Below are positions 1-6,021 of a stretch of DNA of 6,021 nucleotides, piece after piece. Under the pieces are notes generated by a model. It was given only the letters and a program-made list of their open reading frames with translations, ran no database searches and was not told where the DNA came from. The stretch is from Octopus sinensis (lineage: Eukaryota), in NCBI RefSeq assembly GCF_006345805.1, contig NW_021830079.1, forward strand, positions 1 to 6,021, in the 5' to 3' direction. Each line of letters starts with the position of its first letter. The first letter of the stretch is position 1. A program made the position numbers and the translations under genes.

Positions 1-20
1 GCTTGACTGTGTGCTTACAC

Positions 21-48
21 GTGTGTGTATGTGTGTGTGTGTGTGTGT
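21..48. repeat. (TG)n microsatellite
   Basis: GT dinucleotide run with one interruption (gtat at 27-30). Confidence 0.95.
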
Positions 49-227
49 CAGTTAATGGTACATGGTTCTTCGATGGATCTGAGTGTGTAGAACCACAATA
101 CATAACTACATCGCTTTATGAGCCATGTAGGACTCTTCTTTGCTTTAGCTAGTCCAGCTACAAATAACAGCTAAATATCCCTCATGTCACTCCCTACGCT
201 GTACAAAATGATATTCATAGATTATGC

Positions 228-525
228 TTGGTCCTTCTCGAGCCATGCCTGGCTCATAAGGGCCGGTTTCCCGGTTTCCTTGGCGTATAGGTTCCCCATC
301 TAGACGGGACGCCGGTCCGTCACAGGTGAGCTGCAAGATGCAGGAGGAAAGAGTGAGAGAAAGTTGTGGTGAAAGAGTCAGCAGAAATTCGCCATTACCT
401 TCTGCCGGAGCCGCGTGGAGCTTAGGTTTTTCGCTCATAAACACACACATCACCCGGTCTGAGATTCGAACCCGCGATCCCTCCACCGCGAGTCCGCTGC
501 TCTAACCACTAGGCCATGTGCCTCC
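228..525 (-). mobile_element. tRNA-derived SINE, full length (head A / body X / tail 1)
   Basis: The minus strand starts GGAGGCACATGGCCTAGTGGTTAGAGC. Pol III A box TGGCCTAGTGG (506-516) and B box GGTTCGAATCT (462-472). TSD TTC[A/T]TAGATTATG at 214-226 and 528-540. Head and body are homologous to 3350-3553, and the tail is homologous to 945-1020. Confidence 0.85.
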
Positions 526-822
526 CCTTCTTAGATTATGGTGTGGGAAAATAAAAAGCGAGACGGCCATCGCTGGAACGCCTTTGAATATATAGATCTA
601 CTATTTCAGGGCTGACATGGTTCTAAATAACAACGTGAGGGATAAGCGCATTGGATGATGTAGTCATGGATACACTATATCTGAGAGTGTGTCTGAATAC
701 CATTTTTTATAGAGTCTACTGGTCAAGCCTGACCTGGGGTTAAACACCAACATGAACAACCACAGCAAGAAAAGCAAGAAGGAACATAAAAACATTGTTT
801 TAGATAGGCTATGTCATATAGG

Positions 823-1052
823 GTGTCAGCATCATGATCGTAAGATTGTGGTTTCGATTCCTGGACCGGGCGACGCGTTGTGTTCTTGAGCAAAACATTT
901 CATTTCACGCTGCTCTAGTCCACTCAGCTGTCAAAAATGAGTAACGCTGCGATGGACTGGCGTCCCGTCCAGCTGGGGAACACATACGCCATTGAAACCG
1001 GGAAACCGTGCTCATGAGCTTGGCTAGGCTTTAAAAGGGTGCGTTTATTTTT
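823..1052 (+). mobile_element. 5'-truncated tRNA-derived SINE (CORE-like body, tail 1)
   Basis: Exact 13-bp TSD TATGTCATATAGG at 810-822 and 1053-1065. B-box-like GGTTTCGATTCC, then GACCGGGCG as in the other heads. GTTGTGTTCTTGAGCAAAACA resembles the SINE CORE domain. The 3' part GGACTGGCGTCCCGTC..GGGGAAC..GAAACCGGGAAACCG matches the tail of the 228-525 element. Confidence 0.85.
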
Positions 1053-1288
1053 TATGTCATATAGGTGAACAATCTTTGCAGATGAGGATTGACTTGGGTC
1101 TAAATGACGGCAACAAGGAGAAACACATTAGATAGTGCAGTCCTTGATACACTAGGTCCGAATGAAAGACGGTGGTCATAGCTGGAACAATGTTTATAGA
1201 TAAAAGCTAACTTGGGTCTAAGCAACAACAGCAACAACAAGGAAAATACATTAGATGATGTTGTCCAAGGTACACCATATCCGAAAAA

Positions 1289-1702
1289 GGCGGCCAGCTG
1301 GCAGAATCGTTAGCACGCCGGGCGAAATGCTTACCGGTATTTCGTCTGCCGTTACGTTCTGAGTTCAAATTCTGCCGAGGTCGACTTTGCCTTTCATCCT
1401 TTCGGGGTCGATTAAATAAGTACCAGTTACGCACTGGGGTCAATGTAATCGACTTAATCCGTTTGTCTGTCCTTGTTTGTCCCCTCTGTGTTTAGCCCCT
1501 TGTGGGTAGTAAAGAAATAGGTATTTCGTCTGTCACTACGTTCTGAGTTCAAATTCCGCCGGGGTCGACCTTGCCTTTCATCCTTTCGGAGTCGATAAAT
1601 TAAGTACCAGTCACGCACTGGGGTCAATGTAATCGACTTAATCCGTGTGTCTGTCCTTGTTTGTCCTCTCTGTGTTTAGCCCCTTGTGGGTAGTAAAGAA
1701 AT
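1289..1702 (+). mobile_element. tRNA-derived SINE with an internal 184-bp tandem duplication
   Basis: Head GGCGGCCAGCTGGCAGAATCG (A-box-like) and GAGTTCAAATTC (B-box-like). Units 1336-1519 and 1520-1703 differ at about 12 positions. Imperfect TSD AGGTACAC[C/T]ATATCC[G/A]AA at 1268-1285 and 1703-1720. Confidence 0.85.
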
Positions 1703-1949
1703 AGGTACACTATATCCAAATGAAAGACAAAGAAGTCATGGCTGGAACAATTTTTACCGATGATGATTGATTTAAGTCTAAATAACAACAACGAGGGAAA
1801 ACACCAAATATTGTAGTCCAAGTTACACTATATTTAAATGAACGACGGAATGGTCGTGGCTGGAATATCTTTCATCAAGGCGGCGGGTGGGTAAAAAAAC
1901 AAAACGAAAAAACTTGTCGCTGTATTTCATGCTTAACCCATTTTAACCC

Positions 1950-1971
1950 ACTGTCCTCGTTTGGGGACAGT
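1950..1971. other. GC-rich 9-bp hairpin
   Basis: ACTGTCCTC-GTTT-GGGGACAGT (one G-T pair), directly abutting the left arm of the 64-bp inverted repeat. Confidence 0.6.
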
Positions 1972-2549
1972 TGTATTTGGTTTATTTGCTGCAATAAAGG
2001 TTAACTGGACATTTCCGTATGTTTGTTATCCCTGTTTACTCTTTACTCTTTTACTTGTTTCAGTCATTTGACTGCGGCCATGCTGGAGCACCACCTTTAG
2101 TCGAGCAAATCGACCCCCAGGACTTATTCTTTGTAAGCCTAGTACTAATTCTATCGGTCTCTTTTTGCCGAACCGCTAAGTTACGGGGACGTAAACACAC
2201 CAGCATCGGTTGCCAAGCGTTGTTGAGGGGGACAAACACAGACACACAAACACACACACACCCACATACATATATATATATATATACATATAAACGACGG
2301 GCTTCTTTCAGTTTCCGTCTACCAAATCCACTCACAAGGCTTTGGTCGGCCCGAGGCTATAGTAGAAGACATTTGCCTAAGGTGCCACGCAGTGGGACTG
2401 AACCCGGTACCATGTAGTTGGTAAGCAAGCTACTTACCACACAACCACTTAACCCTGTCGAAATTTTCTAAATAGTTATATATAAACAGGGATAACAAAC
2501 ATACGGAAGCGTCCAGTTAACCTTTATTGCAGTAAATAAACCAAATATA
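1972..2549. repeat. 64-bp inverted repeat (foldback) later split by a SINE
   Basis: 1972-2035 is the reverse complement of 2486-2549 with 4 mismatches. The residual spacer 2459-2485 is 27 bp. Confidence 0.85.
2036..2448 (-). mobile_element. tRNA-derived SINE with internal (CA)/(TA) microsatellite
   Basis: The minus-strand head has an A-box-like TGGTTGTGTGG, a B box GGTTCAGTCCC and a CORE-like GGCACCTTAGGCAAATGTCTT. Microsatellite at ~2236-2292. Simple-repeat tail (TTTACTC)n on +. TSD TTA[T/A]CCCTGT at 2026-2035 and 2449-2458. Confidence 0.88.
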
Positions 2550-3162
2550 GTCACAACGTAACGAAAGTAAATCCACTATTAAGTAACCAATGGCAACTGT
2601 TGTGATTTTGGAAAACTACCAACCATATTTGAACACGTGGATCCCTAGCGGCAGTTACTGTACAGGAGATAATCACTTTTGGATTAATCTTAAATCATGA
2701 CGTGGTGAGGAATTTTAATTTTAAATCAAAGAGTAACAAAGATGCACCGAATAAACAAATTTGATATTCCTATTCATTACAAATACTATTAGCCATAGGT
2801 ATCCTTGAATAGCACCATTCTATTCTTATTTGGAACCAAGAACATGATATAACCCAAGGCAAACACATTGCACCAAATTACACCATTTTAGGAAGCGAAA
2901 TAGTTTAGAAGAAATTCAAGAAATGCGTGTTTTCAGTGCTAGGTTAAGCTTGACAGAACAAACAAGTGATAAAAGGCACTCCCTCTGGCTATGATGATTA
3001 CATTTATTTTCAGGCCTACCATATTTATAACAACAATATTTAATGTGTACTTTCTCTTTATAAGACGCTAGTGATTTGACTTAACGGTGATTTGACTGCT
3101 ATTTCTAACAGAATGAAGTGGCGATCCTTGGATTCAATAAACATATCAGTTGTTGTTGCTGT

Positions 3163-3553
3163 TTGTTTGTTGAGCGAAGCGGTCTTCGTCCCAGAGCTCG
3201 CAGGATCGTGCCTCTGTAGTGGGAGAAGTCCGAAATGTGGTCCTTTGCTATTCGTAAGACCCGCAAAAGAGAAAGCAGGTCAACCTCCGAACATCGACGG
3301 ATGGATGAATGCGCATCCAGGCTCAGCGGTTGCGTAGGAAGTCGGGGACAAGAAACAGGAAGAAAGAGTAAGAGAAAGTTGGAGGGAAAGAGTACAACAG
3401 GGGTCTCCACCACCCAATGTTGGAGGCTCGTGGAGCTTTAGGTGTTTCAGGTGTTTTCGCTCAATAAGCACACACAACGCCCGGTCTGGGAATCGAAACC
3501 GTGATCCTCCGACCGCGAGTCCATTGCCCTAACCACTGGGCCATTGCGCCTCC
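3163..3553 (-). mobile_element. tRNA-derived SINE, full length (head A / body X / tail 2)
   Basis: The minus strand starts GGAGGCGCAATGGCCCAGTGGTTAGGGC, with A box TGGCCCAGTGG and B-box-like GGTTTCGATTCC. AAC-type tail. TSD TGTTGTTGCTGT at 3151-3162 and 3556-3567. There is a 9-bp internal duplication AGGTGTTT[C/T] at 3440-3457. Confidence 0.85.
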
Positions 3554-3711
3554 ACTGTTGTTGCTGTCTCTGTTTAACTTCAAATTATGTGTTCATGTTG
3601 ATTAATGACCAAAGTCTCCAACAACCTTATGCTAACTGACATATTTAAACAGAGATCGCCAAACATCGAGAATATAGATGTCAACCATTTTGCATTTTAT
3701 ACATTTTTAGC

Positions 3712-3975
3712 TGTTTCAGTCAGTGGACTGAGGTCATGTTGGGGCAACACACTGAAGGGTTAAAGGCGCACAAATCGGCACCAGTTCTTATTTTCAAGTC
3801 TGTTACATATGAAATCGATCACTTTAGCCGAACCGCGATGTTACAAGGAGATAAACAAGCCAACACCAGTTGTTAAGTGGTAGGAGACGGACTCAATCTC
3901 AGACAGACACGCATATATATATATATATACACACACACATCCACATCCATCCAGCCCTCTTTTTGCGTCCGACCG
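3712..3975 (-). mobile_element. Old, diverged 3' part of the same SINE family as 2036-2448
   Basis: Colinear similarity to 2055-2320: TTTCAGTCA.TGGACTG.GG.CATG.TGG.GCA, CAAATCG, GCCGAACCGC..GTTAC, followed by the same CA/TA microsatellite at ~3900-3945. Confidence 0.7.
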
Positions 3976-4433
3976 TGGTCATTGTAACATCGATATTTTC
4001 CCTGTATTTGTGAAAGTTTTGTATCTCTGCCGTAAGGCTTCGTTTGCACACACGCCAGCTGAATTCAATTCGTCCCCAGTCAAAAGACACCTGTTGTTTT
4101 GTTCTGTTATTATTATTTTTATTTTTATTGTATTTTGTATTTATATTTGTGTAACATCGTCTGTTTTCTCGTCCTTGTTTTCGTATACATTCGATGCTTT
4201 CTTCAAAGGAATCTAACGCTCTTAGCTTAGTTTTTCCTTGGGGCTGGCGAGATTGGAGCAATCTCAAGATTAATCAGCCGAAATTGCGAGGATGATCCAG
4301 TTCTTGACTGAGGATAGAAAGCTTCGAATGACCAGTCCTTGTTTTTTTTTTTTGCATCGTCTATCTCGATGTTTTGTTGTCCCTTTTTGTATCACCTAGT
4401 TGTCTGGATGTTTTGCGTTCTTGTCCAATTTTG

Positions 4434-4439
<6 letters not shown>

Positions 4440-4465
<26 letters not shown>
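4440..4465. repeat. (TA)n tract, left flank of the foldback dimer
   Basis: Pure TA run. Its end overlaps the arm terminus ATAATAG. Confidence 0.95.
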
Positions 4466-4631
4466 ATAGTTATCGCCATACTAATATGGCATTCTTATAA
4501 AAATAAGAAAAAAGCTGTCCGCTTATTAGCTTCATGAGGCCATCGCCTTAAGTTAGCTATTTGATACACAAACTGTATTCATATAACCTTCGAACAAGGG
4601 AGGTCAGTCGCTCCACACTACTTGACCGGCA

Positions 4632-4673
4632 GCTACAGACCCGTTTCGGGGTATTGCCCCTTTTCAATGCAGC
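4632..4673 (-). ncRNA. Minimal type I hammerhead ribozyme motif (copy A1)
   Basis: The minus strand reads GCUGCA UUGAAAA GGGG CAAUA CCCC GAAA CGGG UC UGUAGC. Predicted cleavage is between 4638 and 4637. Stem III ACGGGU is not palindromic in this copy. Confidence 0.6.
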
Positions 4674-4858
4674 GTAGCCAGCCAGTAGGTGTCGCTTCCG
4701 ACAATCTCTGTTCGATGGTTTTATTTACCTAGTTTCGGTGGAATACATCCACTTGTTTTATATTTCTATTATTGAAAACAAGTGGAGTATTCCACCGAAA
4801 CTAGGTAAATAAAACCATCGAACAGAGATTGTCGGAAGCGACACCACTGGCTGGCTAC

Positions 4859-4899
4859 GCTGCATTGAAAAGGGCAATACCCCGAAACGCGTCTGTAGC
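4859..4899 (+). ncRNA. Minimal type I hammerhead ribozyme motif (copy B1)
   Basis: Stem I GCUGCA/UGUAGC, core UUGAAAA (4865-4871), stem II GGG-CAAUAC-CCC, GAAA (4884-4887), palindromic ACGCGU, and GUC cleavage triplet ending at 4893. Stem I extends through UGGCUGGC (4848-4855)/GCCGGUCA (4902-4909). Confidence 0.7.
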
Positions 4900-5125
4900 T
4901 TGCCGGTCAAGTAGTGTGGAGCGACTGACCTCCCTTGTTCGAAGGTTATATGGATACACGTTTGTGTTCAAATAGCTAACTTAAGCGATGGCCTCATGGA
5001 GCTAATAAGCGGACAGCTTTTTCTATTTTTAAGAATGCCATATTAGTATGGCGATAACTATTATTTTCCGGGAACGCGTGCCGCTGTTCTCTTTTAGAGA
5101 GACTTAGTTATTTTAATATTTCTAT

Positions 5126-5141
5126 TATATATATATATATA
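5126..5141. repeat. Short (TA)n tract between the two foldback units
   Basis: TA run joining the tail of unit 1 to arm A of unit 2. Confidence 0.9.
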
Positions 5142-5305
5142 ATAGTTATCGCCATACTAATATGGCATTCTTATAAAAATAAGAAAAAAGCTGTCCGCTT
5201 ATTAGCTTCATGAGGCCATCGCCTAAGTTAGCTATTTGATACACAAACTGTATTCATATAACCTTCGAACAAGGGAGGTCAGGCGCTCCACACTACTTGA
5301 CCGCA

Positions 5306-5347
5306 GCTACAGACCCGTTTTCGGGTATTGCCCCTTTTCAATGCAGC
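5306..5347 (-). ncRNA. Minimal type I hammerhead ribozyme motif (copy A2)
   Basis: The minus strand reads GCUGCA UUGAAAA GGGG CAAUA CCC GAAAA CGGG UC UGUAGC, a homopolymer shift relative to A1. Predicted cleavage is between 5312 and 5311. Confidence 0.5.
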
Positions 5348-5534
5348 GTAGCCAGCCAGTAGGTGTCGCTTCCGACAATCTCTGTTCGATGGTTTTATTT
5401 ACCTAGTTCGGTGGAATACATCCACTTGTTTTAATATTTCTATTATTGAAAACAAGTGGATGTATTTCACCGAAACTAGGTAAATAAAACCATCGAACAG
5501 AGATTGTCGGAAGCGACACCTACTGGCTGGCTAC

Positions 5535-5575
5535 GCTGCATTGAAAAGGGCAATACCCCGAAACGCGTCTGTATC
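5535..5575 (+). ncRNA. Minimal type I hammerhead ribozyme motif (copy B2)
   Basis: GCUGCA UUGAAAA GGG CAAUA CCCC GAAA CGCG UC UGUAUC. The GUC triplet ends at 5569. There is one stem I mismatch (T5574). Confidence 0.6.
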
Positions 5576-5801
5576 TGCCGGTCAGTAGTGTGGGGAGCGA
5601 CTGACCTCCCTTGTTCGAAGGTTATATGGATACAGTTTGTGTATCAAATAGCTAACTTAAGGCGATGGCCTCATGGAGCTAATAAGCGGACAGCTTTTTT
5701 CTTATTTTTATAAGAATGCCATATAGTATGGCGATAACTATTATTTTCCGGGAACGCTGCCGCTGTTCTCTTTTAGAGAGACTTAGTTATTTTAATATTT
5801 C

Positions 5802-5806
<5 letters not shown>

Positions 5807-5841
<35 letters not shown>
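5807..5841. repeat. (TA)n tract, right flank of the foldback dimer
   Basis: Pure TA run. Confidence 0.95.
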
Positions 5842-5847
<6 letters not shown>

Positions 5848-6021
5848 TGGAACTTGAAAATCCTTGGTAGAGAAGTATATTTAGTTAAAAAATAGTAATG
5901 AGTTTTCTGATAATCCCCATACAAAACAAAACATCTCGAGGATAGAATCACTCTAGAGGGCACCACTAAACGAATTCAAGGCATGACTGAGCTCGATTAT
6001 TGGGACTGCCTTAAAGCCTTG

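Follow-up and report, generated by a model that had tools for sequence, protein, structure and literature searches.

Organization of the locus

We analysed a 6021-nt stretch of Octopus sinensis DNA (NCBI RefSeq assembly GCF_006345805.1, contig NW_021830079.1, positions 1-6021 of the forward strand; hereafter the window), in which four copies of a motif resembling the hammerhead ribozyme, two on each strand, are embedded in a repeat element bordered by (TA)n microsatellites (Table 1). An earlier note on this DNA had drawn attention to one of these motifs, arm 2 in the table, and had counted four copies; the letters and position that it gave for the motif are confirmed by the sequence itself, and all four copies were found. 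Read directly, arm 2 is CCACUGGCUGGC-UAC-GCUGCA UUGAAAA GGG CAAUA CCCC GAAA CGCG UC UGUAGC-UU-GCCGGUCAAGUAG. Judged from its sequence, the motif belongs to the hammerhead class and has a predicted cleavage site, and it is probably part of a short non-coding retroelement resembling the retrozymes of other animals.

Table 1. Hammerhead motifs (arms) and element copies in the window, in order of position. R1 is the covariance model described in the text; predicted cleavage sites follow from hammerhead numbering.
Feature	Position	Strand	Details
(TA)13 microsatellite	4440-4465		left border/target
Inverted copy 1	4466-4759	-	element body, tail-less; 5' end at palindrome centre
Arm 1	4617-4690	-	R1 core match 4632-4673, 28.4 bits; helix II GGGG/CCCC; helix III CGGG, non-palindromic
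Arm 1, predicted cleavage site	between + positions 4638 and 4637	-	
Junction 1	4760-4774	+	15 nt, ATATTTCTATTATTG; repeats final 14-18 nt of 3' tail
Direct copy 1	4775-5064	+	element body
Arm 2 (motif of the earlier note)	4844-4917	+	R1 core match 4859-4899, 27.3 bits
Arm 2, U3 and A8	4865; 4870		
Arm 2, helix II	4872-4883		GGG/CCCC, closed by G10.1-C11.1
Arm 2, GAAA	4884-4887		
Arm 2, palindrome ACGCGU	4887-4892		
Arm 2, GUC	4891-4893		
Arm 2, predicted cleavage site	after C4893	+	C17
Tail of direct copy 1	5065-5126	+	62 nt; tails on direct copies only
(AT)7	5127-5140		separates the two composites
Inverted copy 2	5141-5432	-	
Arm 3	5293-5364	-	R1 match 5306-5347, 17.5 bits; reads CCCGAAAACGGGUC; helix II/G12 region disturbed
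Junction 2	5433-5448	+	16 nt, AATATTTCTATTATTG; also matches tail end
Direct copy 2	5449-5744	+	element body
Arm 4	5519-5590	+	R1 match 5535-5575, 18.6 bits; helix I mismatch UGUAUC
Arm 4, predicted cleavage site	after C5569	+	
Tail of direct copy 2	5745-5805	+	
(TA)17.5 microsatellite	5807-5841		right border

The repeat consists of two 676-bp composites, in each of which an inverted and a direct copy of the element are arranged as a near-perfect palindrome with arms of ~300 bp. The 14-18 nt with which the tail ends recur unchanged in the junction between them (ATATTTCTATTAT); thus, the template of the direct copy, whether tandem or circular, appears to have exceeded one unit in length. When tail and body are joined, the inferred unit is 356 nt long, is non-coding, has a GC content of 42.4% and, folded as a circle, reaches a minimum free energy of -102.5 kcal/mol (z = -4.1 against dinucleotide shuffles). 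The evidence for a tandem arrangement at this locus consists of the 14-18 nt junction, as motifs on the same strand are 676 bp from each other and an inverted copy intervenes. At four positions the left arm differs from the right arm in the same manner in both composites, which are therefore duplicates of one another. All four motifs accordingly descend from a single insertion and hold no information on covariation. A blastn search with the flanks for a paralogous empty site was dominated by (TA)n matches and returned no usable site.

Hammerhead architecture of the motif

Both the sequence and its predicted fold support the topology that had been suggested for the motif, that of a type I hammerhead with a long helix I containing an internal loop, a helix II closed by a G-C pair, GAAA and a GUC cleavage triplet. 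Compared with the canonical core (C3 U4 G5 A6 N7 G8 A9 / G12 A13 A14 / A15.1-U16.1 / H17), only two positions differ, C3 being replaced by U and G8 by A; the four-arm consensus otherwise keeps an intact core, together with the G10.1-C11.1 pair, the GUC triplet and the loop geometry. C3 and G8 form a Watson-Crick pair in the active hammerhead fold, and U3-A8 would represent an isosteric double transition that preserves this pair; tolerance to exchange of C3-G8 is reportedly context-dependent. As the earlier note had stated, U3-A8 is a compensatory variant of C3-G8, documented as a natural covariant in Penelope-like elements (PMC4209133). Its description as 'covarying' holds relative to the canonical consensus but not among the four copies, given their common origin.

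The copies differ in both of the shorter helices. The CGCG of helix III, which generates the ACGCGU palindrome, is limited to the two + arms and is replaced by CGGG in both - arms, whereas in helix II the + arms have GGG against CCCC and the - arms have GGGG. The local reading of arm 3 is CCCGAAAAC, which disturbs the junction of helix II and GAAA.

In the minimum free energy fold of the arm consensus, helix I is formed by 6 bp, the UAC/U internal loop and a further 12 bp interrupted by one bulge; helix II forms as well (mean pair probability of the two helices, 0.97), and both are also present in the corresponding fold of arm 1. Folding z-scores of single arms, relative to dinucleotide-shuffled sequences, lie between -1.3 and -3.1. 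Helix III of the monomer, by comparison, comprises 2 bp (A15.1-U16.1 and C15.2-G16.2) around a 2-nt loop and is not viable alone. Pairing of two + arms through ACGCGU/ACGCGU would extend it to 6 bp, with a calculated gain of ~6 kcal/mol. Helices III of 1-2 bp with a palindromic loop, and cleavage as dimers, are typical of animal type I hammerheads (PMC4209133; PMC7229834). The self-complementary ACGCGU with a 2-bp helix III, which had been singled out as a hallmark of dimer-acting hammerheads, thus matches the published animal norm in the two + arms, but the palindrome is absent from the other two of the four copies.

Chance expectation and model support

The earlier note had proposed a relaxed descriptor and a covariance-model search as checks on the motif. 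In the type I descriptor that we used, helix I had to be 6 bp long, the YUGANRA core could have C3/G8 or U3/A8 and no other combination, and helix II, of 3-5 bp, had to be closed by G10.1-C11.1; GAAA was to follow, then a spacer for helix III (0-6 nt) and UH. This descriptor matches three of the four arms and misses the fourth by a single mismatch in helix I. On 120 Mb of random sequence from a first-order Markov model trained on the remainder of the window, it matched nothing, whether the core was set to U3-A8 or to the canonical form. By our rough estimate, post hoc choice of the two deviating core positions makes chance matches of the order of 10^2-10^3 times more frequent, and the expectation for 6 kb is still far below 1. 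The resemblance of the motif to hammerheads is thus far beyond chance.

The covariance model, R1, was built from four cloned retrozyme hammerheads with mapped self-cleavage sites: coral Amil224, mussel Mg353, and axolotl Ax353 and Ax330. Their sequences, published as supplementary data (PMC7229834, Cervera & de la Pena 2020), were aligned, the textbook structure was imposed, and the window was searched unfiltered. The four arms are the top four matches in the window (28.4, 27.3, 18.6 and 17.5 bits, with E-values of ~4e-7 to 8e-4 by a rough calibration), and the runner-up has 6.5 bits. These scores are high despite the penalty that R1 puts on U3 and A8.

Comparison with published elements

Among published elements, the closest in organization are the non-LTR (non-long terminal repeat) retrozymes, which consist of short (~170-400 bp) non-coding tandem units, each with a type I hammerhead (PMC7229834). 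Mussel Mg353 and axolotl HHR_Amex1/Ax330 resemble the window element in having a low-GC unit of ~330-390 bp, one type I hammerhead on the sense strand, a 6-bp helix I, a 4-bp helix II, GAAA, a helix III of 1-2 bp with a palindromic loop (GAAACGCGCGUC in mussel, GAAACAUGUC in axolotl and GAAACGCGUC in the window), a highly structured predicted unit RNA and an expected dependence of cleavage on dimers. The GC content below 45% and the highly base-paired unit RNA that characterize retrozymes are both found in the window unit. The similarity extends to the loops. The internal loop lies 6 bp from the core and has three nucleotides against one (UAC/U in the window, UGC/U in axolotl Ax330 and AGC/U(A) in coral), and loop 2 is A-rich (CAAUA, compared with CAAAAA and AGAAA in published motifs). 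A motif of the Ax330 type retains all conserved contacts between loop 1 and loop 2 (PMC7229834). Unlike the retrozymes, which have C3-G8 and uninterrupted tandem arrays, the window element has U3-A8 and combines the 14-18 nt partial-tandem junction with an inverted copy.

The second group of comparable motifs are the hammerheads in the pseudo-long terminal repeats (pLTRs) of Penelope-like elements, where motifs on opposite strands form pairs 100-700 bp apart (PMC4209133, Cervera & de la Pena 2014). The U3-A8 covariant core has ~1,300 matches in Schistosoma mansoni (PMC4209133), and the Cercyon motifs of that species share with the window motif the U3-A8 core, G10.1-C11.1, palindromic positions 15.2-16.2 and the opposite-strand pairs. 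These minimal hammerheads differ in having a helix II of 7-8 bp, a helix I of 4-5 bp, an extra nucleotide before position 10.1 and no helix III, whereas the window motif has a canonical 6-bp/4-bp frame with an internal loop in helix I, and the window has no open reading frame (ORF) for a reverse transcriptase or endonuclease. The suggestion that the motif was 'hidden' holds only for CUGAUGA and Rfam searches; the U3-A8 core itself has been in print since 2014.

Insertions of Penelope-like elements are characterized by partial tandems, often with an inverted 5'-truncated copy abutting the 5' end (PMC8557442, Craig et al. 2021), by a tail of 30-40 bp at one end only and by a bias for (TA)n (PMC8557442). 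The tail has been traced in vitro to internal initiation of reverse transcription (PMC11167929, published in 2024). The partial tandem, the inverted copy, the one-sided tail and the (TA)n target are all present in the window; in contrast to the published insertions, its tail is 62 nt long and the element, at ~0.36 kb, is non-coding.

Parallels in other octopods

The window contains a repeat resembling a short interspersed nuclear element (SINE), and hypothetical proteins of both Octopus vulgaris and Argonauta hians match its ORF (2019-2417). Together with the 85-90% identity of other window repeats to O. vulgaris loci, these matches place the host among the octopods. We scanned with R1 61 kb of octopod DNA around three proteins matched by this ORF, a sample that includes loci L001 and L002 of O. 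vulgaris and L003 of A. hians, and found nine hammerhead-like motifs in four repeat families.

Two of these families, both in Argonauta, are close parallels for the window element. At L003 (GCA_054771915.1) positions 12505-13448 comprise (TA)n, an inverted partial copy of 124 nt, a 15-nt loop, direct tandem units of 354 bp and (TA)n again; the units carry a hammerhead with a canonical core and the helix III palindrome AUCAGCGCUGAU. Positions 14740-15744 hold 357-bp tandem units that are 99-100% identical to each other, plus an inverted copy. In these repeats the host clade, the unit length, the order of (TA)n, inverted partial copy, ~15-nt loop, direct units and (TA)n, the sense-strand location of the hammerhead within the direct units and the palindromic helix III are as in the window. 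They differ from the window element in having no sequence similarity to it that blastn could detect, in having cores that are either canonical (CUGAUGA, CUGAAGA) or deviant (CCGUUGA), and in forming true tandem arrays of two to three units. As a separate observation, the 15-nt loop of the first Argonauta locus resembles the 15-16 nt found in the window, which hints at a fixed snap-back geometry at integration.

A third family at L003 also ends in (TA)n and has GAAACGCGU in common with the window motif. In O. vulgaris, L001 (GCA_951406725.2) contains another hammerhead-like family at 3722-3767 and 5368-5413 (UUGCCA CUGAUGA ... GAAA UCCAGA UC), the two motifs being on the same strand 1.6 kb apart. 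In an alignment of five octopod families, the three helices are paired in 91.9% of cells, compared with 57% when shuffled and 25-45% after the pairing partners have been displaced by sliding, and both members vary in 11 of 13 pairs; as the alignment was fitted to R1 and the hits were chosen by R1, these figures are biased towards structure.

The left flank of the insertion (4019-4460) is itself a repeat, which runs into (TA)n and shares 74-76% identity with O. vulgaris L002 17604-18002 (+) and 16794-17139 (-), and these relatives form an inverted pair as well; no hammerhead-like match was found in the 4019-4460 repeat. Exact look-up of two ORFs spanning the arms and of one SINE ORF returned no record, and when the element consensus was translated in six frames and its stop-free stretches were concatenated into a protein query, nothing matched at E<=0.01.

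Origin and activity of the element

We conclude, with a probability of roughly 0.78, that the motif is the type I hammerhead of a ~356-nt non-coding, retrozyme-like octopod retroelement that would be mobilized by the reverse transcriptase/endonuclease machinery of Penelope-like elements, its cleavage and mobilization being predictions from the features described above. A master locus would carry head-to-tail units, and its sense transcript would contain successive hammerheads. Because helix III of the monomer is too short, two motifs are proposed to pair through ACGCGU into a double hammerhead with a 6-bp helix III. Each motif would then cut after the GUC triplet (C17) and release a 356-nt RNA with 5'-OH and 2',3'-cyclic phosphate ends, which, once circularized, could be copied into nicked (TA)n by a Penelope-type enzyme through target-primed reverse transcription. 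Reading slightly past the unit length would produce the junction that repeats the tail end, and snap-back priming would produce the inverted copy, head to head with the direct one; the 676-bp composite would later have been duplicated in tandem within (TA)n.

A stronger version of this proposal, namely that natural cleavage activity resides in the family consensus, as a U3-A8 hammerhead with a full canonical type I frame (6-bp helix I with the tertiary layout of loops 1 and 2, 4-bp helix II and palindromic helix III) that drives the circular RNA of an undescribed cephalopod retrozyme family, we put forward tentatively and at somewhat less than even odds. The four present copies are regarded as by-products of insertion rather than working ribozymes. 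In a transcript of the locus each motif is opposed by a perfect antisense copy ~230 nt away, which would trap it in a hairpin of ~300 bp and outcompete the ribozyme fold, and each copy carries an extra defect.

Several observations, beginning with this trapping, weigh against our interpretation. The extra defect is present in four copies out of four, helix II being one G short in the + arms and the palindrome broken in the - arms; to this are added the helix I mismatch of arm 4 and the disturbed helix II/GAAA junction of arm 3. The hammerheads of Penelope-like elements cleave poorly or not at all in vitro (PMC4209133). Hammerhead cleavage was dispensable for in vitro insertion of PAc, and no reads ended at the cleavage site (PMC11167929). 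The 357-bp Argonauta family has the core CCGUUGA (U4 to C, A6 to U), a non-compensatory change that is expected to be inactive, in an otherwise intact setting (helix I, G-C closed helix II, GAAA, palindromic CUAUAG and UC), yet this family looks recently amplified, so that spread may be possible without intact catalysis. The window contains no ORF for a reverse transcriptase or a GIY-YIG endonuclease, its longest ORF (132 aa) belonging to the SINE-like repeat. The association with Penelope claimed in the earlier note is thus supported by the insertion architecture and the (TA)n target but not by coding sequence in the window; the link is one of architecture, and the element is not an autonomous Penelope-like element. 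As for further copies, exact-pattern scans for the element in metagenome contigs (two), viral contigs and prokaryote genome contigs gave no match, and blastn of the window element against the 61 kb of octopod DNA detected no similarity. Finally, Rfam cmscan (E<=10) of the whole window and of the 91-nt slice 4835-4925 reported no hammerhead family. This last result has little weight, because Rfam likewise misses canonical-core motifs of the same class in 3.3 kb of Argonauta L003.

The defects of the four copies, the low or absent in vitro activity of Penelope-like element hammerheads, the cleavage-independent insertion of PAc and the 99-100% identity of Argonauta units with a deviant core would all be compatible with a catalytically dead relic of a retroelement hammerhead, kept as neutral sequence or as a structural element for the retroelement machinery. 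What makes this alternative less likely, though still plausible, is that both core changes hit exactly the partners of the C3-G8 pair and restore Watson-Crick pairing. For two random substitutions among ~13 core positions, we calculate the chance of obtaining exactly C3U and G8A at ~1/700, or ~1/78 if only transitions are allowed. Moreover, the same covariant recurs ~1,300 times in Schistosoma (PMC4209133), and the remaining core, G10.1-C11.1, GUC and loop geometry have stayed intact in the four-arm consensus.

It is far less probable that the hammerhead likeness arose by chance inside a foldback DNA repeat or miniature inverted-repeat transposable element (MITE), with the long hairpin, as a terminal inverted repeat or as the precursor of a hairpin or small RNA, being the true feature. 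The region is indeed a near-perfect palindrome with ~300 bp per arm, and in place of a hammerhead Rfam gives microRNA-precursor models (MIR6217, MIR7723, MIR4208 and others) with 70-95 bits at 4675-4857, 5349-5533 and 4988-5219. However, all of these matches are under the gathering score (95 bits against 110 for MIR6217), and such models match any long perfect hairpin; we therefore rejected a microRNA precursor as an explanation. The absence of descriptor matches in 120 Mb of random sequence and the R1 scores of 17-28 bits on the arms against 6.5 for the best background further argue against chance. A DNA transposon or MITE was rejected because a transposon with terminal inverted repeats would not leave a junction in which the tail end recurs, and because the locus lacks the logic of terminal inverted repeats and target duplication; the presence of a tail on one side, the insertion into (TA)n and the true tandem parallels in Argonauta point in the same direction.

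Least credible of all is that the 676-bp composite is itself the functional unit, an ambisense viroid-like foldback retrozyme cut at C4893 and C5569 into a 676-nt, nearly self-complementary RNA: the same-strand sites are spaced 676 nt apart, motifs occur on both strands and the arm differences common to both composites indicate copying as a whole, but unequal exchange in the flanking (TA)n explains these differences more simply, the - strand motifs lack the palindrome, the hairpin would sequester both ribozymes and the inverted copies in Argonauta are partial and variable by-products.

Returning to the interpretation as a retrozyme-like element, the ribozyme class, the U3-A8 variant, the dimer-dependent helix III, mollusc retrozymes and the insertion architecture have all been published. 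What may be new is the family, its octopod host and the occurrence of U3-A8 in a canonical 6-bp/4-bp type I frame instead of a minimal Penelope-like motif. Since the mechanism class, the core variant and the architecture were already known, the advance is an incremental one, adding one host clade and one family. On the practical side, standard annotation with Rfam and CUGAUGA descriptors overlooks a class of hammerhead-bearing repeats in octopod genomes, where such repeats appear to be dense, judging from the small sample of nine motifs in 61 kb. If the U3-A8 consensus cleaves, it would represent a natural base-pair exchange at the catalytic C3-G8 in a tertiary-stabilized type I hammerhead. 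An active family would then offer a natural test bed for this exchange, and octopods would join the animals seeded with Penelope-mobilized ribozyme circles. If, on the other hand, the consensus does not cleave despite its spread, this would be further evidence that Penelope-type elements retain hammerhead-shaped RNA for a reason other than cleavage.

Other features of the window

Apart from the hammerhead-bearing element, the window contains several repeats that are 85-90% identical to O. vulgaris loci. One repeat is present in two copies (437-517 and 3464-3544; also 334-378 and 3349-3393) that are 83-84% identical and, by eye, look derived from transfer RNA (tRNA); ARAGORN detected no tRNA in the window, including at these copies. 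Positions 1336-1707 comprise a 184-bp unit in tandem duplicate (93% identity), a repeat that is also found in O. vulgaris L002 at 85-90%. The SINE-like repeat (2039-2449, ~410 bp) is 87-90% identical to its O. vulgaris copies and is flanked by 78-nt inverted repeats (1974-2051 and 2470-2547; 88% complementary); it may be another foldback or a nested insertion.

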